A program made the position numbers and the translations under genes. The notes under the pieces were generated by a model. The model saw only the letters and a list, made by a program, of their open reading frames with translations. It was not told the DNA's origin and ran no database searches. Shown here one piece after another: positions 17,569 through 36,100 of a DNA stretch of 64,000 nucleotides. Positions within the stretch are counted from its first letter, which is position 1, and each line of letters starts with the position of its first letter. Source of the stretch: Phaeosaccion multiseriatum (taxonomy: Eukaryota; Protista; Ochrophyta, other classes); assembly GCA_965112735.1 (NCBI GenBank), contig OZ218959.1, forward strand, positions 992,001 to 1,056,000. The letters are read 5' to 3'.

Positions 17569-18211
17569 GAAAAGTTGTGCATCACACCCCTGGTACTTAG
17601 AAAGAAAACGTTTGCTCCCTTTTTAAGTGCCCTTGATCACACACACCTCCTGTACAGTACTTTGCACACAACTCCTGGCTGGCGGGCAGAGGCGGTCGTG
17701 GAGTGGTCGATCATTGTCAGGCGGTGGCCTATAGTGGCATAATCTGGCAGCAATTTAGCGAAATGGAGAGGTCTATGAAGGACGAGGAAGATCAGGAGGT
17801 GTGGAATAGACATTTATTACGCTTACTACTACTATTTATAGTCTCCATCACATCACTTTGTGTACACACTAAACTAAATACTAACAAGGCTTCTCTTCCT
17901 ACTTTGGGTAAGCAACAAGGGGGTCTAATTTATGTGTTCAGAATGAGGCCCCCTTGGTTTATTTCGGGCACTTCTCAGCCTCCAGCTGCTGCTGCTGTCT
18001 TTGCCAGGTGTAGAGCACCCGCTCCAAGACAGCACTCCACAACTTCGCTCAAGCGCTGCTGCTTGTCTGTCCGCAGCTCAGGGCCGACGATTCGACAGAG
18101 CCACAATCAAGCAAAGTTAGTAAACAGACCTGAGCAGCTGGAGGGACAGCACTCAGTCGTCTTGACACCAACCCTGAGCAGCTAGAGAGACCGCACTCAG
18201 TTGTCTTGACA

Positions 18212-20449
18212 TCACCCCCTCGGGGCCATCATAGCCCCCTCGTCCTTGAAGGCGATGGAGCAGCTCTTGAGCAAGTTCAGCGCCTTTAGCGTGCCCTTCT
18301 CGTAGCATGTCACCTTAATCTCGCTGCCCCCGAAGGTCATCTCCACGTCTACGCCGCGCTCCTTGAATGGCTTTGTCATGTCCATCCCAATCTCAATAAT
18401 GGCCACCTCTCGCGTGTACACATCGGGGTCCTTGACGTACTCCACGTCCTTCTGTCGGCTGGTGAGGAGTATCAAAGTGATGCTCGTGTGCGTGTCCAAG
18501 ATTGGAGAATAGCCTGCACGGGCCTTAAAGCCATGCGGTATTGAATCTCCCCTCGTCACATGTTTGCGAAGTATCCGGAGTCGCTCTTCTCCACATATCA
18601 TTTCCATCTGATGACGCCGTGCCTCGTGCTCCTGCTTGCCCGGCTTGAACTTTGTGGTGCTTCTAACGCAGTAAGTCAGGCGAGCGATACGAGAGGCGAA
18701 AGTCGCTTCACTTGAAGCAAACAGGACTGCTCCCTTGACGATGGCCAGTCCCGGTCGCGGGGCCTCCACGACATGTAGACCGTTGATCGAAGAAGTGTCC
18801 TGGAACCTTTCCCGCACAGCGTTGCGCAGGATGGAGCATTCGCTGAAGCCGCCCACCAGAATGATGTACTTGAGACCATGCAGGCGCTTGTCCAGCAGCA
18901 GCTCGGCCACGAACGCGACGATCTGCGACACCTGCGACGAGAACCACGGCTCCACCACTGCGGGAGGGATCTTCAAGGTCCGCTTCATGCCCCCAAGGCG
19001 CTCCTGCGAGGGCGGGGCGGGGCGGGGGGGGGGGGGGGCTTATGAGCAAAAGAGCTTAGAGAAGCACGTCACCCCGACTGCTTCTATGTTTGGACGCCGT
19101 TCTCTTACCTCGTCCGAGTGACTGTAGTTGTAAAAGTCCTTGAGGAGCTGCAAGTCGTTGGTCTCCAGCTCAAGCCCGTCCGCCAAATCTCCGAGACTGA
19201 GGCTGAGGTTTTCACCCTTGGCGTAGCCGATTTTCTGATCTTCCCACCGCCGCATGAGAGCGAGCTCGTGAGGAGTGCCTTCAACCCTACTCCAGTTGGC
19301 TGCTCCCAAGAAGGACTGTCAAGACGGTGGTAGGGAAGACAGGACAGACCAGAAACGGAGGCGTCAAGGAGACGGGTTGACCAAAGCCGATCTCGACGAG
19401 CCGACGTCATTGCTTGCAAACAGATAGCCCTCCCCTCTTGTCTGCTGCTCTCACATTCTCCCTGTCTTTCGGCTCCGCCCCCATCTCTTTCCCGTTTCTC
19501 TCGGCCGCTCATTCTGATGACACCTCGCTCCTTACACACTCCACGCTTCAGGTACTCTCCACTGCTACTCATTCACTCACTCATGCACCAACCAAGCCTC
19601 GCCCAATCCTTGGCTAACATGTCCACCTACCTGCATGAACTTTTTGAACTCCTCGTCCACTTTCCCCGCTGCCCATGACCCGCCACAGGGGGCGATGAGC
19701 TCCGCTAGCCTCAGAGGCTGCGTCTGTGTCAGGGTATGCGCCGTGATGTCGACCGTTCCCCCCCCGCAGTCGAGGACCATGATCTTGTCCCCCGGACTCC
19801 ACGGTCGCATGGACTCAGGTGTGGCATTGACACACAAACACGCCGCCTCCGGCTCCAGGCATAGCTTCACTTGAACATTGTCGACGCGGTCACTCTTCAG
19901 GCCCGCTTGGAACGCAGCTTCTTGCATAAACGACTTGCCGAAATCGAGCCAGATGGCAGGCACAGTGAGCATCCACTTGATACCATTGGCTTGCACGTGG
20001 AAGCCGCTTCGGCAGAGGCGCTCAAGAATCTTCACTTTGAAATACTTGAGGGCAGCTGAGAACACGTGCATGAGTGGCATCGCCTGGCCATCCTCTGCAT
20101 AAGCGAGTGGCTCCAAAGTACTCTCGTATCCGCCAGGCTTGTGCAGGTGCATCTTAAAATGCCTAAAGAGCATCCATTTTGGATTCGCAAGCTTGCCTTT
20201 CTCCTCATCCAAGTACCGCTCAATGGCCGCTTTCCCGAAGCTCGTCGCCTCCGTAGCGGCCCCGTCTGCCCTCTCGATGAGAACCGCGGTCTCGTCTTTG
20301 TCCCACCCGTCAGCTTCCCCGTCAGGAGTTGACATGCGTATATCATGGTGCTCAGTCCCAACCGTCCCGTACGCGTACGCCGACCTGCTTGTTCCCAGAT
20401 CGATGGCCACCACAAAAGCGCCTGCAGCAGCAGCTGCGAAGGCACTCAT
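18212..20449 (-). CDS. HSPA12-like atypical Hsp70, copy A (3 exons: 20449-19631, 19315-19109, 19003-18212; ~605 aa)
   Basis: Hsp70/actin-fold motifs VVAIDLGTSRSAYAY, WMLTVPAIW, LCLEPEAACL, MVLDCGGGTVDIT, IILVGGFSEC and PGLAIVKGAVLF. Phase-0 GT-AG introns. No canonical lid or EEVD tail, as in HSPA12-type proteins. Confidence 0.88.
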
Positions 20450-20853
20450 GATCACCCTCTCCTCCCTTTAAGTTCTCTCTCTCCTGCTGCTTCCTACTCC
20501 TGCCGCTCCTCCTGCTGACCACAAATAGAAATAGACGTCTGGAAAATCACGAAAGTCCCCCCACACTTATTCCTCACTCCTCCGACGGCGGCGTTGATTT
20601 CTGTTGAGCTGCTCCCGCGATCTAGCCGTCTTCGGGGTATGATGTGTGAGCATTTGTGGGGTTAGTGCTTTATGTATTGTGCGCAGGAGATTGAACGAAC
20701 TGCTCCCACGTAGCACGCACTCGGGATTGCAGCGCACAGCACAGCATGGTTTGTTTTTAGAGAGCAGAAGCGTGGTGAAGGAGTTTGTTGGAGGGCTCAC
20801 GCTGCGCTAGGCACTTTTCTCTCTCTCTGAATCAGGTGCAGGTGCTGAACACC

Positions 20854-22725
20854 ATGTTTGGAAAGCCGAGGGACTCACGCACTCAACCCTTAGACCAGCT
20901 TGCGACCGGAATCCCGAGACCACGCAGTACTAGCCGAAGTAGCGCCACCAGCAGTACATGCACCGGCAGCCCGCCGTCCCCCCCGTCCCCACCGAATTTG
21001 ATCAATGCTCCAACGAGGAGGGCAGCACACGCCTTTCCACGTGGTGTAGAAGACGAAGGGGCCAAGCGAAGAACAAGAAAGCTCGAGATCGGACTTCGTG
21101 AGGCCCAGGACGAGGGGAGGGCCGCCACGGATCGATACAATCGACTAAAGAAGGGGGCAAGGGAGTTGATAAGAAGCATAGAAGAGGAATCGAACGCCAA
21201 GAGAAGAGATAGCGAGCGCGAGCTGGAGGCAGCAAAGAACGACACTGATCGCCTCCGCAGAGAGCGGAATGACTATCGGGAGAAGATCGTTGAGCTTGAA
21301 AGGACGAAGGAAGCCTACAAAGATCAGGCACGAGAGCACCGTATTGAGGGCAAGAAGATGGAGGATGAAAGAGATACGGCCTTGCGCCAGTACGGAGAGG
21401 TCAAGGAGGAGCTCGTCAGCATGAAGATGGGTATGGGGGAATCTGCGGAGAATATGGAGGGACTGGAGGGAGCGATGGGCATCATCAAGAGCTTGGAGCA
21501 GGCAGGCAGTGTGACGGAGCTGGCCAAGGTCTCCCTCGAGCTTGACCAGGTCAGCGCGGAGCTTGCCCAGGTCACCGAGGAGCTTGCGAGTGTCAAAGTT
21601 GAGATGGCAGGGAAGGTGGAAAATCTGGATGAAGCGCTGCGCCTCAAGAGCCAGGAGTACCGCGACGTCTACAGGAACATGACGGAAGTCTATCAGCTAT
21701 ACGAAGAGACCAAGACGGAGCTTTCGTGCGTCAAGACCGACAACGGCCACGTCGCTAATGAGATGGCGGCTCTTCGAAATAGGCGTGATATGAAGGTGAA
21801 GGATCTGGAGGTAAAGCTGCGAGACAAGTGCGAGGAATGCGACCATGGAACCTGCCACGGCGCGAAGGAAACTAGGCAGCTGCTCAAAGAGGCCGAAGCG
21901 GAGCTGGAGAGGATAAAGGCTGAGAACACCAGGATTGTGGGCCAAGCTCTGCTCCGGGATGCCTCCGTCAACGCGGGTGTGGCCAACATTGCCTCCAGCT
22001 TGAAGAGCGGCCAGGAGGTGGGACGCATCATCGGGACGACCTTGCGACCGGCGCTAGAGGATCTAGTTGAGATTATGCTGGAGGCCGAGCACGGTGTGCC
22101 CTGCTATCTCCTCTTCCTCCTTACGTGGATTTGCCGTAAGGCCGTGAAGAAAGAGGAGAGGACACGGCTCCATGGCCTCCGCGGTTTCTTGGGAGAGATT
22201 GAGGACATTAGCGGCAGTTTCGCCACCGTGGGGCACGCCAGTTCTGCCGCGACGAAGGAGTTCGTCTCATACCATGTGCACGCCAACGGCTCCAAGCTCC
22301 TGCCGCCACTGTCAGTTACGGAAGTCGCCTCCCTGCCCATCATGGGAGAGGAAGGGGGGCACGGCCACAATCCCATGGTGCGCATGGCGAACAGCGTGAT
22401 ACAGAGCGCCAGGACAAGCCTGGAGGCCGACAAGAATGTCGACGAGGAGCTCCGAATCGCAGCGCTGGTGTGGATGGACAGGCTGTGGAATACACGAGAG
22501 CTGCAGAAAGTGGTGCAGGTAGCGCTTTTCGTTTTCGCACAATGCGCGCTGCAGCCTCATGGAGGTGCCACCATCTGTGAGGGAGAGCACGACGCAATCG
22601 GATCAAGGGCTCGGTTCGATCGAGCAAAGCATGACGAACCACTAGACGGCGAGAGTGGCGTGGGAAGAGACTGCGTCGTAATGTTTCCTCGAACCAAGTT
22701 CTCCAAAGCGCTCGTGCTGATGTAA
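20854..22725 (+). CDS. Intronless long coiled-coil protein with helical region and GrpE/MIEAP-like C-terminal motif, copy A (~623 aa)
   Basis: First ATG at 20854 in the 646-codon ORF. Ser/Pro-rich N-terminus, ~300 aa of E/K/R heptads, then a C-terminus ending RFDRAKHDEPLDG...CVVMFP...KALVLM. A paralogue lies at 29184-30527. The domain call is an inference. Confidence 0.8.
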   Translation: MFGKPRDSRTQPLDQLATGIPRPRSTSRSSATSSTCTGSPPSPPSPPNLINAPTRRAAHAFPRGVEDEGAKRRTRKLEIGLREAQDEGRAATDRYNRLKKGARELIRSIEEESNAKRRDSERELEAAKNDTDRLRRERNDYREKIVELERTKEAYKDQAREHRIEGKKMEDERDTALRQYGEVKEELVSMKMGMGESAENMEGLEGAMGIIKSLEQAGSVTELAKVSLELDQVSAELAQVTEELASVKVEMAGKVENLDEALRLKSQEYRDVYRNMTEVYQLYEETKTELSCVKTDNGHVANEMAALRNRRDMKVKDLEVKLRDKCEECDHGTCHGAKETRQLLKEAEAELERIKAENTRIVGQALLRDASVNAGVANIASSLKSGQEVGRIIGTTLRPALEDLVEIMLEAEHGVPCYLLFLLTWICRKAVKKEERTRLHGLRGFLGEIEDISGSFATVGHASSAATKEFVSYHVHANGSKLLPPLSVTEVASLPIMGEEGGHGHNPMVRMANSVIQSARTSLEADKNVDEELRIAALVWMDRLWNTRELQKVVQVALFVFAQCALQPHGGATICEGEHDAIGSRARFDRAKHDEPLDGESGVGRDCVVMFPRTKFSKALVLM

Positions 22726-23212
22726 GTATAGCAGACCACAAGGTTGACAAATACATAGGAGTAACGAAATAAGTAATTAAGGTTGTAATGCATAGGAGAC
22801 AGATACACGTCTTTGAGCAGCACAGCACTGTCTTCACTCCCTGTTGTAGCACTCCTTGTCGCGACACTCCTTCTCCTGGGCGTTTGGTCCTCTCCTTCCC
22901 CCGCCGCCCATCCCGTGTCCCCCCCCCCGGAGCACGTGCCCCACTCGAGCTGCAGTGGTGTACGACAGCCAAAAGCACGACGCTTCTTCATGTTCCCCAC
23001 ACTAGGGCGCCTCTGCATCAGCCCCCCCCTTCCCTAGGGACCGAACCGCCGCCTTCCCCCCCCACTCGCTCTCACTGGGCACCGCGATGGCTTCTCCCCG
23101 TACTGCCTCGAGGCCGGTTACGAGTCTTTCTTCTGTCTCTGACACCTTGCGACTCACCACGCCGTTGTGCAGCAGCGGTGCCCACCACTTGGCTGCATGG
23201 GACGCGGAGGGT

Positions 23213-23596
23213 TCAGCAGGCACAGGGAATGAGGTATTGGGGGAAGGAGTGTGTGGATGGCACCTGATGTGAGCCAATCAGCACGGATGCCGGCGCTCAC
23301 CTGGCACCTGCCGGTTGTAATCGTGCAGCAAGTTTGCCCTCTTGTTGAGCAGGCCGGGGTCTCGCTCCAGCCCCACGCTCCGGGCCATGTTCACAAGCAG
23401 CACCTGTGGACGGACACGTGACAACACAAGAGGGGCATAAGGCCACAGGAGGAGGCTCCCAACCCGCACACACTCACACACACACGCACACACACTCACT
23501 CACGAATACACACACACTCACACTCACGAATACACACGCACGTATACACACGTACACACACAAGCACATACAAACACGCACATCCACCAACACACA

Positions 23597-23636
<40 letters not shown>

Positions 23637-24291
23637 CACACACACGCAAACTCACCTCGAGCGAGTGGAAGGTGGAGGCAAATGAAAAGTCGTCGCCCCG
23701 TCGGATGCGCAGCAGCCACTGCGGTCGATAAGGATACAGAGCAAAGGGGGTTGGCGTGAAATCAGAGTACCACACCATACCACATCTCCGCAAGACCACA
23801 TCAGGCTCTGTGTTTGTGTCCTGTTTATGAACCGTGCGCTTCTCCCGACGGAGCTACGAAACCTTTACTTACGGGACTCCAAAACTTTTGGAGGATGTTC
23901 CTGTGGAGAATGAAGCCTCGCTCCGCATCCTCCGGTCTGTCCGCGTCAATCCTGAGCACCGACGCGAAGCTGCCCAGCATGCGCTTGGCCACGAACACGA
24001 GGGAGGTCGCCTTGGAGCGGTTGGGGAAGAATACGTCGAGAGAATCCAGGCGGTAGCTCTCGCACGCCGGCACGTAGGCCTGAGGGGGAGGAGAGGGGCG
24101 TGAGAAAGGACAGGCGTAGGAGTAAGAGAGGGAGAGAGAGAGGACGGAGCGGTGGGCGAAAAAAGCACAGGCGTTTAGGCAAAGAGGGAGAGAGAGAAGA
24201 GAGGGAGAGAGAGAGAAGAGAGGGAGAGAGAGAGAAGAGAGGGAGAGAGAGAGACAGAGAGAGACAGAGAGAGACAGAGACAGAGAGAGAT

Positions 24292-24332
<41 letters not shown>

Positions 24333-27300
24333 CTGTGTTGCACATTCGCTCTGCTCCAGGCCTATCCTTACGCACCCGAGTTAAAAAGTTGGGCGGTGTG
24401 GAGGGGATGATGTCGCCTCTCTGGCAGTAGTGGATGAGGTCCACATCCAGCTCCCTGCGTCGGCGCCAAGTGTGAGCAGCAAAGAGGGCAATAAGTGCGA
24501 GGAGGTGGGGCAGGTGAGGTGCCAGCAGCTCCTTAGCTCAGCGGTTGAGAGGCACCCGCCAGTTTGAAATAGTAGAGGCCTTGGGGCAGCTCACTGTTGG
24601 GGCAAGGGCAAGGCGGCAGGCAAATCTGCGTTCCACGCATTCTTTCTTTCGCATAGACACCACCCCACCCTTTTTCCTTTTTGTGTTGTTGTTTCCACCA
24701 TTCATACCATTCATCGAGCCCATATGCCTCTCCCTCCTTGCCCCTCCCTCAGTGCCCCTCCATGCTCCTCCGTCCATCCCACATGCCCCTCCTCACCTGA
24801 GCTCCTTGGTCAGCGCCATGTTGCCCACTCGGGGCGAACAGAAGAGCTTGCCCCTCGTCTTGACACCCTCTCCTGCTGTGCCCATATGCCTGAGGCGCTG
24901 CGCAACGTCCAGCGCGCAGAGTGTGGCCAGGCCGGCGCCGAGTCCGTGGCCACACACCGTCACAGTGTCAACCTTGCCCTCCCGCACGTACTTGTCTAGC
25001 GCCTGCCTCACGTCCTCCTGCAGAGAGTCTCTCTTCTCCTCCTTTCCCTCCTCCTCCTCCTCCTCGTCCTCCTCCTCCTCCTCCTCCTCCTTGTCCTTCT
25101 CCCCGGCCCCCTTCTTGTTCTTCCCTCGGCCGAGCGCGAAGGAGAGAGCGGCGCTTCCCACCTGGTCAATAGAGAACCATAGGAATCCGAAGGCGGCTTG
25201 CACCTTCGCTAGCACCTTCCCGGTGGGGGGAAGGTCATCGCCTTTGCGCCGCGTGTACATGCCCAGCATGCCCCTGTCCGTGAGTGCGTGCGTGGGGAGG
25301 TGGGTGGGTGGGTGCGTGCGTGCATGCATGCGGTAGGCGGGGGTCCGAGGAGAAAGGCGTGAAATCAAATCACACGGTACACTGGTACCTCACTGCCGCC
25401 GAAGCGAAGGCCAGGACAGAGGCAGGACAGGGTCAGGATCGATCTTGGATCGTGGGGTCGATTCTTTGTCTTCTTCTATGGTCGAATGAACTGAAGTGAA
25501 CTGAAGAAAACACACCCGACAGACCCATAGACACACCTGTGCACGGCGATGTTGGGCACTTGTTGACCCCTGTGCTCCGTGGTGGCGCTGAGGAGCCCCC
25601 CTGCGAGGAGCCAGCGCAGAATAGACATGTTCCATTCCTCGCCGTCCCCGCTCTGCAGATGCCACATCGCCTGCCGAGGTGGGGGGCGAAGGGGTGTGTG
25701 TTATGAAGGGTGTAGGGGAAGAACGGAGTGAGCGAGCGAGGACCGTACACCATAGTATACTGGACACCCTCCGTCCCCACACCTTCTGTCTCGACACCCT
25801 CTGTCCTGACATTCGACACCTTCTGTCCTGACACCCCCTGTCCTGACACCTTCTGTCATGACACCCTCTGTCCTGACACCCTCCGTCCTAACACCCTCCG
25901 TCCTAACACCCTCTGTCCTGACACCCTCTGTCCTGACACCCTCCGTCCTGACACCCTGCGTCCTGACACCCTCTGCCCTGACACCCTCTGTCCTGACACC
26001 CTCTGTCCTGACACCTCTGTCCTGATACCCTCTGTTCTCACACCCTTCGTCCCGACACTCTGTCCTAACACCACCCTCTGTCCTGGTCCCCTTTGCCTTG
26101 ACATCCGTATCCTACACTCTTTGTTCTCACGTCCTTTGTCCTAACACACAACTCCACCCACCATGCCCGCCTTGACACCCTCCTGTCGCTCGGTGGTGGT
26201 GAGGGTGCCTCTGAACACGACGGAGAGGTCCCTGCTCTGCGGGGAGTACGCGATGTAGCCTGGCAGGGCAACGGACCATCATAAGGACGAAGTAAGATTA
26301 GACTGTAAGGTGATTTGAAGTTGTGACCCTCCCGACCCTCCCGCTCTACCCCGCCTGTTACCCGCCCCAAGCCAGGCTGCCCCCCCCCCCCCCCTCAGCC
26401 TCTCGCCCGACCTCTCGGGAGCACCGCAAAGCAGGGCAAATGTCTTCCCAGAGAGCGTGCGTTGTCATCCCTCCCCCACCCAGTGCTTTCCCTCCCTCCC
26501 TCGCAGCCCTCCCCATCCATCGCCCCGCCCTCCCTCACATCCATCCATCCCGTTGCTTGCCTGCGAACGTGCGCTCATCCGCCTCCTTCTGCGGCAAGAG
26601 AGTGGTGACCCTATACTTGGCGGCAGCCGTGTACAGAAAGTCCAACACCTCCATTCCCTCGGGAAGGTCCTTGACGGTTGCCCTGAGGAAGCGCTCCAGC
26701 TGGCGAAGCTCCTCGGGCAGCACTCGACCGCCGTCGTGAAAGTGACCAATGTCCACTATGCTTTGGCCGTAGTATCTGAGATGGGCAAGACATTCGTTAG
26801 ACGCCCAGCAGTCCTGAGACGCAGGGTGTCGGGGACAATACTCCTGACAGAGGGGGTAAACCGAGCGGAGAGGGCCTCGGCAGGCGGGCGACACACGTTT
26901 CAGCACCACCCTCTGCCGTACGCATGCCTGCACACAAAAGCGTTCTGCTCCTCCCACTACTGCTGCGGCCGGGGTCGCACCCAAGAGGAGAGGAAAGCGG
27001 ACAGACACTAGTAGTGGGACAGACCCGTGGTGGGAGGAGGCCCTGGCCGGCCGACTGACTGACTGCCCCAGGCACTGGCCGGTCGACCGACTGGATGACA
27101 CCAGGCACTCCCTGACACCAAGTACTCCCGACCTACTCACTTGTTGGAGGAGTCCATGACGAAGAGGTCGTAGGCGGCCTGCACCATGGATCCGTACACA
27201 ATGTCACTCCTTACGGCCTCGTGCATCATCTGAGGCCGTAACACCGTATCGCAAGGAGGGTAGAGAGGTAGAGAGTTTCGTTGTGCCTCTGTCAGAGCAG

Positions 27301-28860
27301 ATGTGTGCACACAAGCCTTTAAAGGGCGTGCGAAATAAAGAAAGCAGCGTGGGCAGACTTGGGGGACGCAGAAGGCATAGAGGGAGAGATGGGAAGGGAG
27401 GGATAGAGAGGTAGACGGGGAGGGAGGGAGAGAGATGAAGGGACGGACGAAGGGGGGCAGAGAGGGAGAAAGAGAGGGGGCGACGGAGGGAGGGAAGCAG
27501 CGGAGGAGAGGGAGGGGGGAGGGAAGGACACGGAGTCCTGATGACACTCCGAGGCCCACTCACGCGAGGACCACTCACCGCGTCCTTGTCCGACCCCGGC
27601 GCAGCGTTGCGCGTGAGCCTCTCTCTCAGAGCCGCACACACCTTGGTCTGACTGGGCAGCGGCGATCGAATCGCCCAGTACAGTCTATACACAAGCGAGA
27701 GACCAATGAATAGAAGGGTTGAGGTCAGTCGAGTGGGAGAGTGCCAGAGTGTCTGAGTGGCAGAGCGGGGAGGGGACGGACTCACTGCGAGTATTTTAAG
27801 AGCAGCGCTGCGGCAAGTAGTCTCACTGCCCTGCCCACATGGTGCGAGGAGGACCAGAGGGCATACTCGTGGCCCAGATGGACAAGAAAGTGTATGCCTC
27901 CTCCGAAGACCAGCTTGAGCTTGGAAGTGGCGCCGAGGGCAGACACCATCCGACCAACTACCCTGAGGACACACACAGCGCCGCACAGAGTGAAAGAGGG
28001 ACTGTCAGTGCTTCGGGAAGTCCAGGTGTGCAAGAAAAGGAAGGGCCGAGCATCTCCTTGCCGTGCTAAGGGGGGGCACTCTCTGTGGGCGGCGGATGGG
28101 GCTTGCCGCCTTCCGAGAAACTCTCTCAATCTCGCTCTCCCTCTCTTTCTTTTTTCTTTCTTTCTCTCTCTCTCTGCCTCTCTCTACCCTCTCTCTCTGT
28201 CCCTCCCTCTGTCTCTCTCCCTCCATCTGTCTCTCTGTCTGTCTGTCTATCTGCCTGTCCGTCTCTCTCTCCCTTTCTCCCTCCCTCTCCCTCTCTCTCT
28301 TGCCGAGCCAAGTAAGGACTTGGGTCCACGGCTGGCCTCCACGGACAAGCCACTCATCCCCGAACACGTCCGATCGCTGCAAGTATGAAAGATAAGCACC
28401 TACCCAAGTACACTTACCCAAGGACGGTGCTCATAAACTCGGAAAGGTTGACTTTTTCCCGGATGGCCTCCGGCACCAGGCCCAGTAGGTTGTGTACGTA
28501 CTCTGCCACGGTGGACTTGGCTGCCTCCGAGGCTTCTCCCACTCCAGCCGCACTCAGTCGTGGGCTTGCGCTTTCCCATATCCCTGCCGCCGACGAGCGT
28601 GCCTTTCCTCTCTCTGTGGACAAAGAAGAAAAATCAAAGCCCACAGAGGCACAAGTCCTCTTGCGCCCCTTTCTCCTGATGATGAAGCCTCCTGGGATCG
28701 CACCAAGCGCTGCTACTCCTGGCGCTCGTTCGGTGGAGCCATGCCCCCGTGCTACGTGCCTCAACAGGGTATGTGCAACAGGAGAGAACGCTTCGCAATG
28801 CCACCCAGCTGTGCACAGCAGCATAATGGTTACTCGAGCAAGCAGTCCCTGCATCTGCAT
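23213..28860 (-). CDS. Multi-exon class-3 lipase / DAD1-like phospholipase A1 homologue with bipartite plastid-type presequence; nucleophile Ser replaced (GHGLG)
   Basis: N-terminus MQMQGLLARVTIMLLCTAGWHCEA-FSP. Exons encode YGSMVQAAYDLF, GYIAYS...DLSVVFRGT, VTVCGHGLGAGLATLCALD, FCSPRVGN, GDIIPSTP and ERDPGLLNKRANLL, in the order seen in Lipase_3 PLA1 enzymes. Confidence 0.75.
25780..26100. repeat. Intronic minisatellite, ~15-bp unit (CTGACACCCTCTGTC)
   Basis: About 20 degenerate tandem copies visible. Confidence 0.9.
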
Positions 28861-29096
28861 CGATACTGAGCATCTTCCCTTGCGCATCGTCGAAGGTCTC
28901 GAGGCGCCACCACAATGCACGGGAAGAGCCAGGTCGCACTCGAAGCAGGAGAGATCAGCTATTGTTCCTTCAACATTATGCAGGTTCTGCGAGATCTCTG
29001 TGAATTATGAAGCACCAACGCGGCAAGAATTTCAGTTTCTGAAAAACTGAAACTGAAAGTGTGTGTGCGTGTGTGCCCTTTGCTTCGGGTGCCCTG

Positions 29097-29193
29097 GGCA
29101 AGTTGTTCAGCAACCGCTTCTATTTCGCAACCGAAGCAAAGGGCAAGAACACGAAGTGAAGGCAAGTTGTTCAGCAACCGCTTCTATTTCGCA
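29097..29193 (+). repeat. Perfect 33-bp direct repeat (GGCAAGTTGTTCAGCAACCGCTTCTATTTCGCA) x2 at the inner edge of the right duplication arm
   Basis: Copies at 29097-29129 and 29161-29193, separated by 31 bp. Confidence 0.9.
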
Positions 29194-30527
29194 CCCTCGT
29201 GCCTGCTATACTCTAAGAGAAGCACAAGAGCTTTGGAGAAGTTGGTTCGAGGGAACAGAATCATGCAGTCTCTACCCACGCCTCTCTCGCCGTCTAGTGA
29301 TTCGTCATGCTTGGATGGCTCAAATCGAGTCCTTGATCCGATTGCGTCGTGCTCTCCCTCACAGATGGTGGCACCTCCATGAGGCTGCAGCGCGCATTGT
29401 GCGAAAACGAAAAGCGCTACCTGCACCACTTTCTGCAGCTCTCGTGTATTCCACAGCCTGTCCATCCACACCAGCGCGGCGATTCGGGGCTCCTCGTTGA
29501 CGCTCTTGTCGGTCTCCAGGCTTGTCCTGACACTATGTGTGATGCTCTTCGCCATGTGGATTATGCGATGGTGCTCGCCCCCTTCCCCTTCCTCTCCCAT
29601 GATGGGCAGGGAGGCGACTTCCTTAACTGACAGTGGCGGCAGGAGCTTCGAGCCGTTGGCGTGCACATGGTATGAGACGAACTCCTTTGTCGCGGCAGAA
29701 CTATTGAGCCCCACGGTGGCGAAGCGGCTGCCGATCTCCTCAATCCCTCCCAAGAAACCGCGGAGGCCGTGGAGTCGTGCCTTCTCCTCTTCCGTGACGG
29801 CCTCACGGCAAGTCGACAGAAGGAGAACAATAAGATAGCAGGGCACACCGTGCCCGGCCTCCAGCATCATCTCAACTAGATCCTCCAGCGCCGGTCGCAA
29901 GGTCGTCACGATGATGCGTCCCACCTCCTGGCCGCTCTTCAGGCTGGAGGCAATGTTAGCCACGCCTACATTGACGGAGGCGTCCAGGAGCAGAGCTTGG
30001 CCCACAATCCTTGTGTTCTCAGCCTTGACCCTGGCCAGCTCCGCTTCGGCCTCTTTGAGAAGCTGCATGTTTTCCTTCATACAGCGAAAGAATTTGTCAG
30101 ATTTCTTCCTCTCGCTGTCCAGCTCTACATGAAGCTCCTCTACCTGAATCTCATGCCTATTTCGCAGCGCCGCCATCTCATTCGCGATGCCATCGTTCTC
30201 GGTCATGACAAGGGCAAGCTTCATCCTCATCTCTCTGCTCTGTTGCCTCACTTGCTCCATCTCTTCATAGATTCCAATGTATTTCTCGTTCTGACTGCTC
30301 ACCGCTCCCTCCAGATCCTCCACCTTGAGCGACATCTCAGCTTTGACCCTATCCAGCTCGTCTATGGCCTGCGCAAGCTTCGCCTCGGTGTCTTCGCTCA
30401 GCGCGGGGCTTCTTCCTTCAAGCTCTGGCTACGCAGCGCTTCCTCCAGCTCCTTCATGGCCTCTTCGTGCTGCCGTACGGCCTTCCTTCTCCTTCTCCTC
30501 CTCCTGGTGTGCACTACTCCTAGCCAT
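29184..30527 (-). CDS. Coiled-coil/GrpE-like protein copy B, 5'-shortened; intact ORF 30335-29184, upstream part interrupted (possible pseudogene or short isoform)
   Basis: The 383-aa ORF is highly similar to the C-terminal ~60% of copy A. ATG 30527 is in frame with it but has a TAG at 30431-30429. Copy-A-like sequence (AVRQHEEAMKEL vs ALRQYGEVKEEL) is in a different frame. Confidence 0.7.
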
Positions 30528-33080
30528 GTTGCTCTCGTGTCAAGGAACCGACAGCGAGAGGGGGGTGGTCCACAGAACTCCTGTCACAACGTAATAACGT
30601 TACAGAAACTCGCCATTTTGGGGAAAAGAAGGGGGGTACAGTGGAGTACAAACAAGGACTAGAAGAGACAGAGCGAGCTTCAGGAAGGGTAGAGTAGGAA
30701 GCGATCATGAGTGCCTTGGCACCTGCAGATGCGGGCACCCTTGTGGTAGCCATCGATCTGGGGACAAGCAGGTCGGCATACGCGTACGGGACGGTGGGGA
30801 GTGAGCATCATGATATACGCATGTCGACTCCCGACGGGAACGCTGACGGGTGGGACAAGGACGAGACCGCGGTTCTCATCGAGAGGGAGGACGGGGCCGC
30901 TACGGAGGCGACGAGCTTCGGGAAAGCGGCCATTGAGCGGTACTTGGATGAGGAGAACGGCAAGGCTGTACACCCCAAATGGATGCTCTTCAGGCACTTT
31001 AAGATGCACCTGCACAAGCCTGGCGGATATAGTAGCACATTTGATCCTGTCGCCTATGCAGAGGACGGCCAGGCGATGCCACTCATGCACGTATTCTCGG
31101 CCGCCCTCAAGTACTTCAAGGTCAAGATCCTCGATCGCCTCAACAGGAGCGGCTTCCACGTCCAAGTCATGGACATAAAGTGGATGCTCACTGTGCCTGC
31201 CATCTGGCTCGATTTCGGCAAGTCGTTTATGCAAGAAGCTGCGTTCCAAGCGGGCCTGAAGAGTGACCGCGTCGACAATGTTCAAGTGAAGCTATGCCTG
31301 GAGCCGGAGGCGGCGTGTTTGTCTGTCAATGCCACACCTGAGTCCATGCGACCGTGGAGTCCGGGGGACAAGATCATGGTCCTCGACTGCGGGGGAGGAA
31401 CGGTCGACATCACGGCGCATACCCTGACACAGACGCAGCCTCTGAGGCTAGTGGAGCTCGTCGCCCCCTGCGGGGGAGATTGGGCAGCTGGGAAAGTGGA
31501 CGAAGGGTTTAAAAAGTTCATGGAGGTACGTGGACATGTTAGCGAAGGATTGAGCGAGGCTTGGTGGGTGCGTGAGTGAGTGATTGAACAGCAGTGAAGA
31601 GTACCTAATGGCGAGTTGTGCAGTGTGTAAGGAGCGAGGTGTCATCAGAATGAGCGGACGAGAGCGACGGGAAAGAGATAGGGGCGGAGCCGGAAGACAG
31701 GGAGAATGAGAGCAGCAGACAAGAGGGGAGGGCTATCTGTTGGCAAGCAATGATATCGGCTCGTCGAGATCGGCTTTGGTCAACCCGTCTCCTTGACGCC
31801 TCCGTTTCTGGTCTGTCCTGTCCTCCCTACCACCATCTTGACAGTCCTTCTTGGGAGCAGCCAACTGGAGCAAGCTGAAGGGCACTCCTCGCGAGCTCAC
31901 TCTCATGCAGCGATGGGAAGATCAGAAAATCGGCTACGCCAAGGGAGCGCACCTCAGCCTCAGTCTCGGAGATTTGGCGGACGGGCTTGAGCTGGAGCCC
32001 AAGGACTTAAAGCTCCTCAAGGACGTTTACAACAGCAGTCACCCTCCTGAGGTAAGACAAACGCTCTGCGTTCCAAATTCGCCTCGAGAAGCAAATCTAC
32101 GTGGCGTGCTGCCCTGCGCTCTTCTGCTCACCCCCCCCCCCCCCCGCCCTCGCAGGAGCACCTTGGGGGCATGAGTCGAAACTTGAAGATCCCTCCCGCA
32201 GTGGTGGAGCCGTGGTTCTCGTCGCAGGTGTCGCAGATCGTCGCGTTCGTGGCCGAGCTGCTGCTGGACAAGCGCCTGCATGGTCTCAAGTACATCATTC
32301 TGGTGGGCGGCTTCAGCGAATGCTCCATCCTGCGCAACGCTGTACGGGAAAGGTTCCAGGACACTTCTTCGATCAACGGTCTACATGTCGTGGAGGCCCC
32401 GCGACCGGGACTGGCCATCGTCAAGGGAGCAGTCCTGTTTGCTTCAAGTGAAGCAACTTTCGCCTCTCGCATAGCGCGCCTGACATACGGCGTAAGAACC
32501 ACCACAAAGTTCAAAGCGGACAAGGAGGAGCACAAGGCACGGCGGAAGCAGATGGAGAAGATAAACGGGAAGGCGCGCATCGCGGTACTTTCCAAGCACG
32601 TGACGAGGGGGGATGACATTCCGCAAGGATTCCGGACCAGGCGCAGTTATTCACCCATCTCGGAGTCGCACACTGGCTTCGCTTTGCGACTCCTTACCAG
32701 CCGACAGAAAGACGTGGAGTACTTGAGGGACACCCATGTTTACACTCGGGAGGTGGCTAGCATTGATATTGACTTGGATATGAAGAAGTCCTTCCGGGAC
32801 CGCGGCGTGGACGTGGAGATAACCTTCGGGGGCAGCGAAATTGAGATAGCGGTCTTTGAAAAGGGCACGAAGAATGAGATCAAGAGCTGCTCCATCGACT
32901 TCAAGGATGAGGACGACGAGGGTGCCGTGGAGGCCGTGTGAGGGGGTCATCTCAAGACTGAGTGCTGCTACCTCTGCACGCAAAGGACCTCAAGCGGCTC
33001 TGCTTACTGTCCTGTCGAACCGGCCGTGAGCTGCGAGCAGATAAGCAGCAGCGCCCGGACGAAGTTCTGGAGTCTTGGAG
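29200..33080. repeat. Right arm of inverted segmental duplication
   Basis: Mirror image of 18020-22740 with the same gene order and intron positions. Confidence 0.9.
30707..32941 (+). CDS. HSPA12-like atypical Hsp70, copy B (3 exons: 30707-31525, 31845-32051, 32156-32941; ~603 aa)
   Basis: Same motifs as copy A and identical exon 1 and exon 2 lengths (819 and 207 nt). Canonical GT-AG sites. Confidence 0.88.
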
Positions 33081-33196: not shown

Positions 33197-36100
33197 CTAC
33201 ACTTCCTCGCACTCATCTTCATCGACCGTCTCCTCTAGCTCCTCCTCCGTCTCCTCGTCCTGCTCGTCCTCGTCCTCGTCCTCGTCCTCCTCGTCCTCCT
33301 CCTCCTGAATGGACATCTCCATTTCGCCGTCGTGATGTTCCATCTCCTCCAGTTCTTCCTCCTCGTCCTCCTCCTCGTCCTCCTCCTCCTCTTCCCTAAC
33401 GGACATCTCCATTTCGCCATCGTCATGCACCGTCTCCTCCAGTTCTTCCTCTTCCTCATCCTCCTCCTCGCCATCGTCCTCCTCCTCCTCCTCCTCCTGT
33501 CGTATTGATATCTCCATTCCGCCATCGTCCTCTACCGTCTCCTCCATTCCTTCCTCCCACTCTTCCCCCTCCTCAGCGGTCTCTACCACTACTCCCTCCT
33601 CCTCGGCGCGACTGCCCTCGCCTACGTCCTCCCTCTCCTCTTCCTCCTCTTCCTCCTCTTCACTCCACCCCTTCATTGAGTTGAGTGTCATGTGCAGCGT
33701 GAGGGCCCCTCCTGAGCGTGCCTCCATGCGCCGCAGCTCCTCTGCCCCTGCTAAAGTGAGGCGGTTCCCGGACATGACGAGCTGCAACTGCACCACTCCA
33801 GACACACTGCCACCGCTGGTACCGCCGCTGTCACCGCCGCTGTTACCGCTGCTGTTACCGCTGCTGCTACCTCTATTGCCCCATGGCCCCCAGCTACTCA
33901 GAGCTCGGACTGCCTCTCCCAGAGCCAGGGCCAACGCCGTGGCACCCTCGTCCCCGATGCAGTTCCTCGACAGGTCCAAGTGGCGAAGCGTGCGCAGCAG
34001 ACATGGCACGGCTCTGACGGCTTGTGCCAGTCGAATGCAGCCCGCGTCTCCTATCCTCTTGCCCATGAGGTTGAGGCTCTCCAGCCACGTCACCTGCGAG
34101 CCCTTGTGCGCTGCTCCTCCCCTGAGTCTGTGCCCGCTTCTGCATCCTCCCCCTCCTCCTCCTCCTCCTCCTCCTCCTCCTCCTCCTCCTCCTCCTCCTC
34201 CTCCTCCTCCTCCTCCTCCTCCTCCTCCTCCTCCTCCTCCTCCTCCTCCTCCTCCTCCTCCTCTTCCTCCTCTTCCTCCTCCTCCTCCTCCTCCTCCTCC
34301 TCCTCCTCCTCTTCCTCCTCCCCCGCCCCGCACACCGTCCCTGCTTTTCCTTTCCAGCACCCTGGCGAGGAGGTCAAGCTGCTTGCAGGTGACGGGTCCA
34401 TCGTACTTTAGCTCGTACAGGGCGGATATGCGCCGCACATTGCTGGGCTTTTCGTTCAGCCGCCGAATGACGTCATACATGGCACTTCCCTCTGCCTCTG
34501 GCCCTGCCTCTGGCCCTGCCTCTGGCCCTGCCTCTTTCTCTGCCTTTGCCCATATGCCTGCCCCTGCTGTGAGAGCCTCCGGAGCAGTGCACTTGCTGCC
34601 GCCGCGTCGGGCCCCTCCTGCGGACCCCCCCCCTCCTTGTCCCTGTGCGTGGTGCCGACGTCGCCGACGAACGGGGGAGGGCGCCACGCCCAACAGGTTG
34701 GCGGGGAAGGAGTCGGCCGATGCTTTGCTCTGCTGCTGTTGCTGCTGTTGCTGCTGCTGCCCTTCCCCTCCCTTCGCCCCTGAGGGCCCGCTCTTCTCGT
34801 CCTGAGCACTGTGTCCACTTACCGATGTCCAAGCGCCTCGTTGCTTGGGGGGGCGGCGTCTCCCCATGGCCGTGCCTAGGCCGAGAAGGGTGGGGGCGGC
34901 GGCGGCGGTGGCCTTGAGCATGAGGGGCGTGGCAGAGCGCTTCCTCCCTCGCGCCACCTTGCCCGTCCCTGCCCCAGCCCCGCTGCCGACACGCGAGTCG
35001 AGGCCTTGGCTGCTGACGCTGTGCCACACTGCCACACTGTGCTGCTCAAGTTGTAGTGTACGCCAGTTGTGTCGCATAGACCCTACTCGGGAGGGAGGCT
35101 CCAGCCCTCCATGGGCCTCCTTCCCCTGCTCCTGTGGTTTGCCGTCATCTTCTTCCTTCTCCCTCCTCTCCTCCTTCTCCTCGTCCTCTTCCCTCTCCAC
35201 TGCGGCAACTCTGGGTCGCCTCATTCGGAAGCGCAAGAATGGAGTGCCTTCTTGCCTCTTCCTCTTGCTCGCCGCCGCTGCTCTCCGCTTCCCGCCATCG
35301 CCATCGCCGCTGCGCTCTCTAATCTTCCGCGCCCACCACTTCTCGGGCAGCGGAGCAGCGCGTGAGAGCATTTGCTGAGCGGTGAGGCTCTGCAACCCAC
35401 CCCTCCCGCCTTTCGTCCCCCCCCCCGTCACAACCCCCCCCCGTACCCCCTCCGAACTATCGCCCATCTTGGAGAGGAGAGGGGACACTCGCGGGGGCAG
35501 CTCCGTCCCTGCCCCTCCCCGCAAAGGAGTGCCTGCTGCCTGTTGCCCGCCCGCCCCCTCGCCCTCGAACGTCTCAGTGGTTTCCGTCTGCGTCATGTCC
35601 TCCTCCTCGGTTCGATTCTCCTCTCCTCCATCCGTCCCTGGGCCCGCTTCGCCCCCTGTCGCTCCTCCTCCTCTTTCTGCTGCTCCTGTACCCCCGCTCC
35701 TCTCCTCGGTGCTCTGTTGCGCAGTTTCTGCTCGCTGCTGCGCCTCGTCCTGCCTGTCTAGCTGCTGCTGCTGCAGTACCGCGAGTCGCTGCTGCTGCAC
35801 AAGTTGCTCTGCCGCGTGTAGCACACCTTGCTGCACGTGCTGTTGGTACGCCAAGCTCGCGTGTTGGATAGCCTGTCCGTCCGTCCGCGAAGCGAGGTAG
35901 ACGGTCAGAAAGGTTAGCGCCTGCACAAGAAACAGACCCCCTGGCCCCGGAGAGGGGTTCCACCCCCACCAACCCCCACTTCCCCGGCGGTTCAGCTCGC
36001 TCAATCACTACTTTGTCCGTACCTTGGCAGCGGCGGTGGAGGTGAGCCTGTGCTTCCTCAGCACCTTGCACACGAACTGGATCCGGTCGTAGTCGAGCGG

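Follow-up and report, generated by a model that had tools for sequence, protein, structure and literature searches.

Two divergent pairs of an HSPA12-like ATPase gene and a coiled-coil partner gene with a putative GrpE/MIEAP-related tail in Phaeosaccion multiseriatum

Two head-to-head gene pairs in an inverted duplication

The window analysed here is a stretch of 64,000 nucleotides of GC-rich eukaryotic DNA from Phaeosaccion multiseriatum (contig OZ218959.1, positions 992,001 to 1,056,000). Between 18.2 and 32.9 kb it contains an inverted duplication, and each arm (A or B) carries an HSPA12-like ATPase gene and a divergently transcribed coiled-coil partner gene, whose product is a candidate co-factor of the ATPase and the subject of this report (Table 1). 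A preliminary description, made from the DNA sequence alone, had recognized a divergent Hsp70 and intronless coiled-coil pair that is present twice, with spacers of ~400 bp in copy A and ~180-370 bp in copy B. We confirm this arrangement: the genes are head-to-head in both arms, the arms are inverted relative to each other, and the spacers measure 404 and 371 bp, the latter lying between partner B and Hsp70-like gene B. No third copy of the gene pair was found within the window.

The protein encoded by partner gene A consists of a serine- and proline-rich N-terminus, a coiled coil (about residues 75-360, ~285 residues), a helical region of ~200 residues and a C-terminal tail. The tail motif that was quoted in the preliminary description is present in both partners. 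The pairing was also said to be kept in both copies, which is correct for the head-to-head arrangement, but partner B is truncated at its 5' end. It lacks the first ~234 residues of partner A, so that the 5' third of the gene is lost, and upstream of its ATG we find coil remnants that are out of frame.

In the ATPase, the Hsp70 phosphate-binding motifs AIDLGTSRS, LCLEPEAAC and DCGGGTVDIT are intact in exon 1, as seen in an alignment. The match to the Pfam HSP70 model is weak (E 0.04-0.09, with exon 1 alone), while DnaK and HscA models match the ATPase at E about 0.002. In exon 3, Pfam detects no canonical Hsp70 substrate-binding domain and no match to DUF8340. The best database relatives of the ATPase are brown-algal proteins with ~45% identity, many of which carry PF00012, and its nearest structure clusters in the ESM Atlas include chordate and mollusc proteins with HSP70 and DUF8340. 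Like the animal atypical Hsp70s HSPA12A and HSPA12B, the ATPase in the window combines Hsp70 phosphate-binding motifs with the lack of a detectable canonical substrate-binding domain or lid, but unlike them it has its closest relatives, at 45% identity, in brown algae. We therefore use "HSPA12-like" as a fair description, in which the animal link is drawn from the Atlas neighbours alone and does not imply strict orthology. According to a 2026 review, the function of HSPA12 is still unknown and its mechanism untested (PMC13580251).

The introns of Hsp70-like gene A are of the GT..AG type and in phase 0. In both copies, intron 2 (19004-19108 and 32052-32155) has a run of ~13-17 C directly before the acceptor, and reads seem to break off at this run.

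The two arms share 85-87% DNA identity by blastn. The 87% match (18238-20453 against 32912-30703) spans the ATPase genes including their introns, and the 85% match (21730-22753 against 30209-29185) covers the 3' 1 kb of the partner genes. Divergence between the arms is patchy across 18020-33080. In exon 3 of the Hsp70-like genes, the synonymous divergence (dS) is 0.05 over the first 105 codons and 0.66 over the remainder, intron 1 is 92.7% identical, and spacers A and B have no alignable similarity (44% identity). This patchiness indicates that the arms of the palindrome underwent gene conversion. Since the spacers cannot be aligned, no conserved bidirectional promoter sequence is demonstrated. 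The ratio of nonsynonymous to synonymous divergence (dN/dS) is 0.19 for Hsp70 exon 1 and 0.50 for the C-terminal 284 codons of the partner, so both genes are constrained, the partner weakly, and by this measure both genes of the pair are under purifying selection.

Metatranscriptome contigs of run X1 that are 95-99% identical to the window match exons of both genes and nothing in between, which is compatible with, although not proof of, expression in a wild relative. Contigs from the read runs X2, X3 and X5, whose run type is not recorded, continue through part of intron 1 and the spacer. Given that these contigs are unbroken, they are apparently DNA and hence provide no evidence of splicing or expression.

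Table 1. Coordinates of the genes, spacer and tail segments of the inverted duplication (positions in the window)
Feature	Position	Strand	Description
Hsp70-like gene A, exon 1	19631..20449	-	273 codons; ATPase lobe; motifs AIDLGTSRS, LCLEPEAAC, DCGGGTVDIT
Hsp70-like gene A, exon 2	19109..19315	-	69 codons; continuous reading frame; aligned to copy B
Hsp70-like gene A, exon 3 and stop	18212..19003	-	C-terminal half
Spacer A, between divergent start codons	20450..20853		404 bp
Partner gene A	20854..22725	+	intronless, uninterrupted open reading frame (ORF) of 623 codons; 623 amino acids
Tail core, partner A	22591..22722	+	residues 580-623; segment aligned to the GrpE-beta/MIEAP-like tail family
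Partner gene B	29184..30335	-	383 amino acids, N-terminally shortened; 69% identity to residues 235-623 of A
Tail core, partner B	29217..29348	-	hidden Markov model (HMM) score 11.6 bits
Degenerate 5' remnant, partner B	30336..30530	-	coil-like frames, frame changes, one in-frame stop
Hsp70-like gene B, exon 1	30707..31525	+	90% amino acid identity to A
Hsp70-like gene B, exon 2	31845..32051	+	aligned to copy A
Hsp70-like gene B, exon 3 and stop	32156..32941	+	aligned to copy A

A tail family encoded beside HSPA12-like genes

With the ATPase as bait, we fetched 80 metagenome loci together with their flanks, and about 36 of these have enough flank. In several bacterial-looking loci, a coiled-coil-rich gene lies directly 3' of the ATPase gene, and the C-termini of the encoded proteins read approximately D-P-P-G..W-I-E..G..F-[ND]-P..K-H-E...P-G-Y....K-A-[IL]-V. 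We started a family HMM from three bacterial tails and iterated it across all ORFs of the fetched loci. A tail-family ORF adjoins the ATPase gene in 18 of the ~36 loci with flank: it is co-directional in six (L041, L052, L054, L055, L062 and L064) and head-to-head in 12 (L007, L009, L017, L019, L020, L028, L029, L030, L057, L063, L071 and L074). The 12 head-to-head contigs are eukaryote-like, and the tail-family gene is on the opposite strand upstream of the ATPase gene, as in the window. The head-to-head partner in L007, a complete protein of 313 amino acids, also resembles the partner in the window in its order of parts: it begins with low-complexity sequence, continues with a coiled coil and a helical region, and ends in the tail at the extreme C-terminus.

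When genomes were scanned with two cyanobacterial tails, an ATPase gene followed immediately by the gene for a tail protein turned up in an Oscillatoriales metagenome-assembled genome, in Okeania and in Trichodesmium erythraeum IMS101, and these three loci together with the six metagenome loci make nine bacterial loci of the same-operon type. Thus the linkage extends beyond one duplication, to nine co-directional bacterial loci and 12 head-to-head eukaryote-like contigs. A word-indexed search with a bacterial tail recovered the query itself and nothing else. Two candidates were rejected along the way: a tail-like motif spotted by eye in L014 has no statistical support, and a match of the family HMM on an LSM domain is a false positive.

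We made several further observations on the bacterial loci. The cyanobacterial operons have a third gene 5' of the ATPase gene (L052:8040-9971, L064:898-2730 and L055:1913-3427), which encodes a coiled-coil-rich protein of 500-640 amino acids with a conserved C-terminal region and without a match in Pfam or PADLOC. In two bacterial members of the tail family (L064:4683-6899 and L084:4723-6258), a helix-turn-helix (HTH) domain follows the tail domain (HTH_3, E 2.6e-6 and 6e-5), so the GrpE-like tail is not always C-terminal, and some members may bind DNA. In L041 (2112-8964), two Hsp70-like genes lie in tandem, and after them come a co-directional and a convergent gene of the tail family.

Several comparisons connect the tail family with GrpE and with MIEAP. 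The scan with the two cyanobacterial tails also retrieved proteins that Pfam calls GrpE (E 1e-47 and 1e-52), and the family HMM matches the beta domains of these two genuine GrpE proteins. When a 21-member family alignment was compared with the two genuine GrpEs in hhalign, the probability was 87% (P 3.7e-6) over 53 columns that span the GrpE beta domain. One bacterial tail weakly matches two Pfam profiles, GrpE (E 0.0018) and MIEAP (E 0.031), in each case exactly at the C-terminal end. In a row-by-row Pfam scan of a 23-row family alignment, MIEAP was matched by 7/23 members (best E 0.00068) and GrpE by 7/23 (best E 0.0021), and no other Pfam family was matched by more than one member. The MIEAP matches are weak, covering about positions 119-195 of the 195-position profile and none of them reaches the 27-bit gathering score. 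Among the eukaryotic relatives, the matches are to MIEAP and not to GrpE. In a plain hmmsearch of PDB sequences, the family profile did not retrieve GrpE. From these alignments, the relationship of the tail family to the GrpE beta domain and the MIEAP C-terminus appears remote but consistent.

The tails in the window join this family weakly. In hhalign, the two window tails match the family with P 6.6e-5 and a probability of 64%, and the match takes in 45 columns at the C-terminal end of each profile; earlier versions gave P 1.3e-4 and 1.2e-3. As single sequences, the window tails have hhalign scores of 24.0 and 26.6, compared with a maximum of 20.5 among 200 shuffles and of 18.4 among 220 other ORF tails from the window. 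With an HMM made from the eukaryote-type members only, the best non-members among 7,896 ORFs are partner B, at 11.6 bits (E 0.094), and partner A, at 8.8 bits (E 0.69). Against 15,792 decoys of reversed or shuffled ORFs, whose top scores are 11.0 and 7.1, the tail of partner B exceeds every decoy, while that of partner A falls between the two top scores. An independent MAFFT alignment arrives at the same register. It places I-G-S-R-x-R-F-[DE]-x-x-K-H-D-E-x-L-D-G of the window over I-G-x-K-V-x-F-N-x-x-K-[YH]-D-S-x-D-G of the family, D-C over E-C, F-P over a nearly invariant P, and K-A-L-V-L over K-A-x-V-L, and the two nearly invariant prolines of the family are preserved in the window tails.

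Based on these results, we believe that the partner in the window probably belongs to the HSPA12-linked tail family, and its tail is best explained as a highly diverged and shortened member of a family related to the GrpE beta domain and the MIEAP C-terminus. The preliminary description had called the tail itself a GrpE/MIEAP-like beta domain. This holds in so far as the family and the GrpE beta domain are related and the window tails are weak members of the family, but the window tails have no direct Pfam match to either protein, no hhalign match to GrpE and no match to either in the fold searches.

A candidate co-factor of the ATPase and its alternatives

Given that the tail family appears homologous to the GrpE beta domain and is coupled to HSPA12-type ATPases, we read the partner in the window as a diverged cognate co-factor that would bind the nucleotide-binding domain (NBD) of the linked ATPase, probably as a nucleotide-exchange factor, and this is the reading that we slightly favor. 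The partner would dimerize through its coiled coil, its tail would dock on the NBD of the neighboring ATPase, and the docked partner would serve as a dedicated nucleotide-exchange factor or as a regulator of the nucleotide state, as GrpE does for DnaK. We infer that the two proteins may bind each other physically, that the partner may have exchange activity and that the pair may be co-regulated.

GrpE is the nucleotide-exchange factor of DnaK and mitochondrial Hsp70. In the DnaK-GrpE system, the GrpE dimer is held together by long helices, and a beta domain is inserted against the NBD, so that the cleft is opened. GrpE (PF01025) and the partner in the window share a layout in which a long N-terminal helix or coiled coil precedes helices and, at the C-terminus, a small beta domain (a predicted one in the partner). 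They also share the genetic pairing with an Hsp70-type ATPase, and the tail family can be aligned with the beta domain of GrpE around F-[ND]-P-x-x-H-E ... P-G-Y ... K-A-x-V. The two differ in size (~200 amino acids in GrpE, 623 in the partner) and in their ATPase, which is of the DnaK type for GrpE and of the HSPA12 type in the window. The cyanobacterial operons of Trichodesmium, Okeania and Oscillatoriales have the same two components as the window and presumably the same partnership. In contrast to the window, their genes are co-directional and are usually preceded by a third, coiled-coil-rich gene, an HTH fusion is present in some cases, and their tails are clearly GrpE-like where the window tail has diverged.

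Several results, which we set out in this and the next paragraph, weigh against a cognate co-factor. Taken alone, the partner is an orphan by direct tests. Neither partner, whether whole or as a tail, matches any Pfam domain, including GrpE and MIEAP, even at E 10. A word-indexed search of 5.8 billion proteins yielded no homologue of the partner, and an exhaustive HMMER search of 1.84 billion representatives yielded no genuine one. With the mixed bacterial-plus-eukaryote HMM, the window tails score inside the decoy range, and hhalign finds no match between the window tails and the two genuine GrpE sequences (P 0.41). The window tails are also about one strand short, with a gap where other members carry G-E-[IV]-[IV]-x before the final K-A-x-V-L. 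A Foldseek comparison, which the preliminary description had proposed, found no significant match of the tail model to GrpE, MIEAP or any other protein in the PDB or among the Swiss-Prot models, and neither did VIA-align. In this fold search GrpEL1 surfaces only at E 8, and the beta part, with ~45 residues, is too small for such searches. The weak constraint on the partner (dN/dS 0.5) points in the same direction.

The distribution of the pairing on the ATPase tree is a further difficulty. In the ATPase-domain tree, the bacterial co-directional loci form one clade and the environmental eukaryotic loci a second, while the window copies fall in a third that also takes in brown-algal and related sequences; all three are deep branches. 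All 12 head-to-head loci belong to the environmental eukaryotic clade, which is large and made up of close relatives, and thus they do not represent 12 independent events. Some flanked loci of that clade have no detectable tail gene. In the third clade, seven loci from brown algae and related contigs have no tail-family gene in the flanks covered, which on the longer contigs extend to as much as 10 kb on each side. The nearest ATPase relatives, those from brown algae, are thus without a partner within these flanks. The association is present in three deep branches but is not universal, and the window organism retains a pairing that is absent, or located elsewhere, in the nearest relatives sampled.

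Alternatively, the partner could be a lineage-specific orphan coiled-coil gene unrelated to GrpE and MIEAP, with a tail that resembles the family by chance and a pairing that was doubled by a single segment duplication. The searches of billions of sequences without a homologue, the lack of a Pfam, Atlas or fold match and the brown-algal relatives without a partner all fit such an orphan, and so does the nature of the remaining support, which is limited to 45 aligned columns, came from only some of the several HMM versions tried, and was obtained with a family HMM that gave the LSM false positive and beside a motif in L014 that looked convincing only by eye. Nevertheless, we consider an orphan unlikely, because the window tails score above almost all controls by two methods in the same register, and because an independent eukaryotic clade has the same order of coil, helices and C-terminal tail in the same head-to-head position beside an HSPA12-like gene.

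Other searches with the partner gave little. No homologue was found among PDB sequences or in a metagenome contig scan, and the ESM Atlas returned coiled-coil noise or scores of 0.35 only. The partner does match models of the coiled-coil type, and no others (SMC, E 2e-7). The single match in the HMMER search, a Gram-positive surface protein with FIVAR/GA repeats, was dismissed as a repeat artefact. A partner-like match upstream of an Ascophyllum Hsp70 gene was rejected as well, as it sits in a stop-ridden tandem repeat; this is a non-coding tandem duplicate of ~590 bp (L002:8340-9110), which is the source of the spurious weak tblastn match to the partner.

A single-sequence AlphaFold model of the partner has a predicted local distance difference test score (pLDDT) of 39 and is unusable. 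A second AlphaFold model, which covers the tail, used the family alignment and is not independent of it; it has three helices followed by short strands at a mean pLDDT of 74, and the predicted beta strands reach block means of 78-88.

The main alternative to a cognate exchange factor is a pure adaptor or scaffold role, in which the GrpE-derived tail would merely hold the ATPase and the coil would position it on a structure such as the cytoskeleton, a condensate or the surface of an organelle, as has been suggested for MIEAP, with no exchange activity. MIEAP (SPATA18) is a p53-induced mitochondrial quality-control protein. Its family (PF16026) has a coiled coil followed by a C-terminal domain, as does the partner in the window, although the partner itself gives no PF16026 match. 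The great length of the coiled coil and of the middle helical region in partner A, the tail that is about one strand short, the eukaryotic relatives that match MIEAP and not GrpE, and the GrpE-like fold that was not recovered would all suit a scaffold. Against it, the tail family is related to precisely the part of GrpE, the beta domain, that contacts the NBD of DnaK, and copy B retains the tail despite having lost much of its coil. On balance we think a scaffold without exchange activity rather unlikely, and continue to favor a co-factor that acts on the nucleotide state.

The preliminary description had also raised a role in defence or non-self recognition. The pair is duplicated and fast-evolving, with a weakly constrained partner, its counterparts in bacteria are operons of several genes, in some cases with an HTH fusion, and HSPA12 genes are massively expanded in bivalves (PMC13580251), all of which could be expected of an immune module. 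However, PADLOC found no defence-system match, yielding coiled-coil noise only for the window proteins and for the proteins of the cyanobacterial operons alike, no effector or sensor domain is present, and dN/dS is <1 everywhere. We consider a defence module very improbable, and the suggestion finds no support here.

It is possible, and we propose it only tentatively, that HSPA12-type ATPases form an ancient dedicated two-component machine with coiled-coil proteins whose tail is GrpE-derived (MIEAP-type), and that the two components have stayed together in cyanobacterial operons as well as in the divergent gene pairs of two or more eukaryotic lineages. If this is true, the animal MIEAP domain would be a homologue of the GrpE beta domain, and MIEAP-like proteins would supply the cognate co-factors that have been missing for HSPA12, a family whose function is still unexplained. 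For HSPA12, a linked partner derived from the GrpE beta domain offers a concrete and testable hypothesis of how the ATPase may be regulated, and it suggests that MIEAP may belong to the same lineage of Hsp70 co-factors. The window is a very diverged eukaryotic example, and clearer cases are found in the cyanobacterial operons and among the environmental head-to-head pairs. In the literature, we found no report of a link between HSPA12 and MIEAP, of homology between MIEAP and GrpE, or of Hsp70-like proteins with GrpE-like coiled-coil partners, although the searchable literature is incomplete and an earlier description is possible.

Neighboring open reading frames

Two other ORFs lie close to the gene pairs, both on the minus strand. 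At the center of the palindrome (24793-25368), a class 3 lipase-like ORF (Pfam Lipase_3, E 8.6e-9) is located between low-complexity LSLS and poly-Ser/Glu stretches. Just beyond arm B (33197-36004), an ORF of 935 codons encodes a leucine-rich repeat (LRR_6, E 2e-10) along with Gly and Glu/Asp runs of great length.

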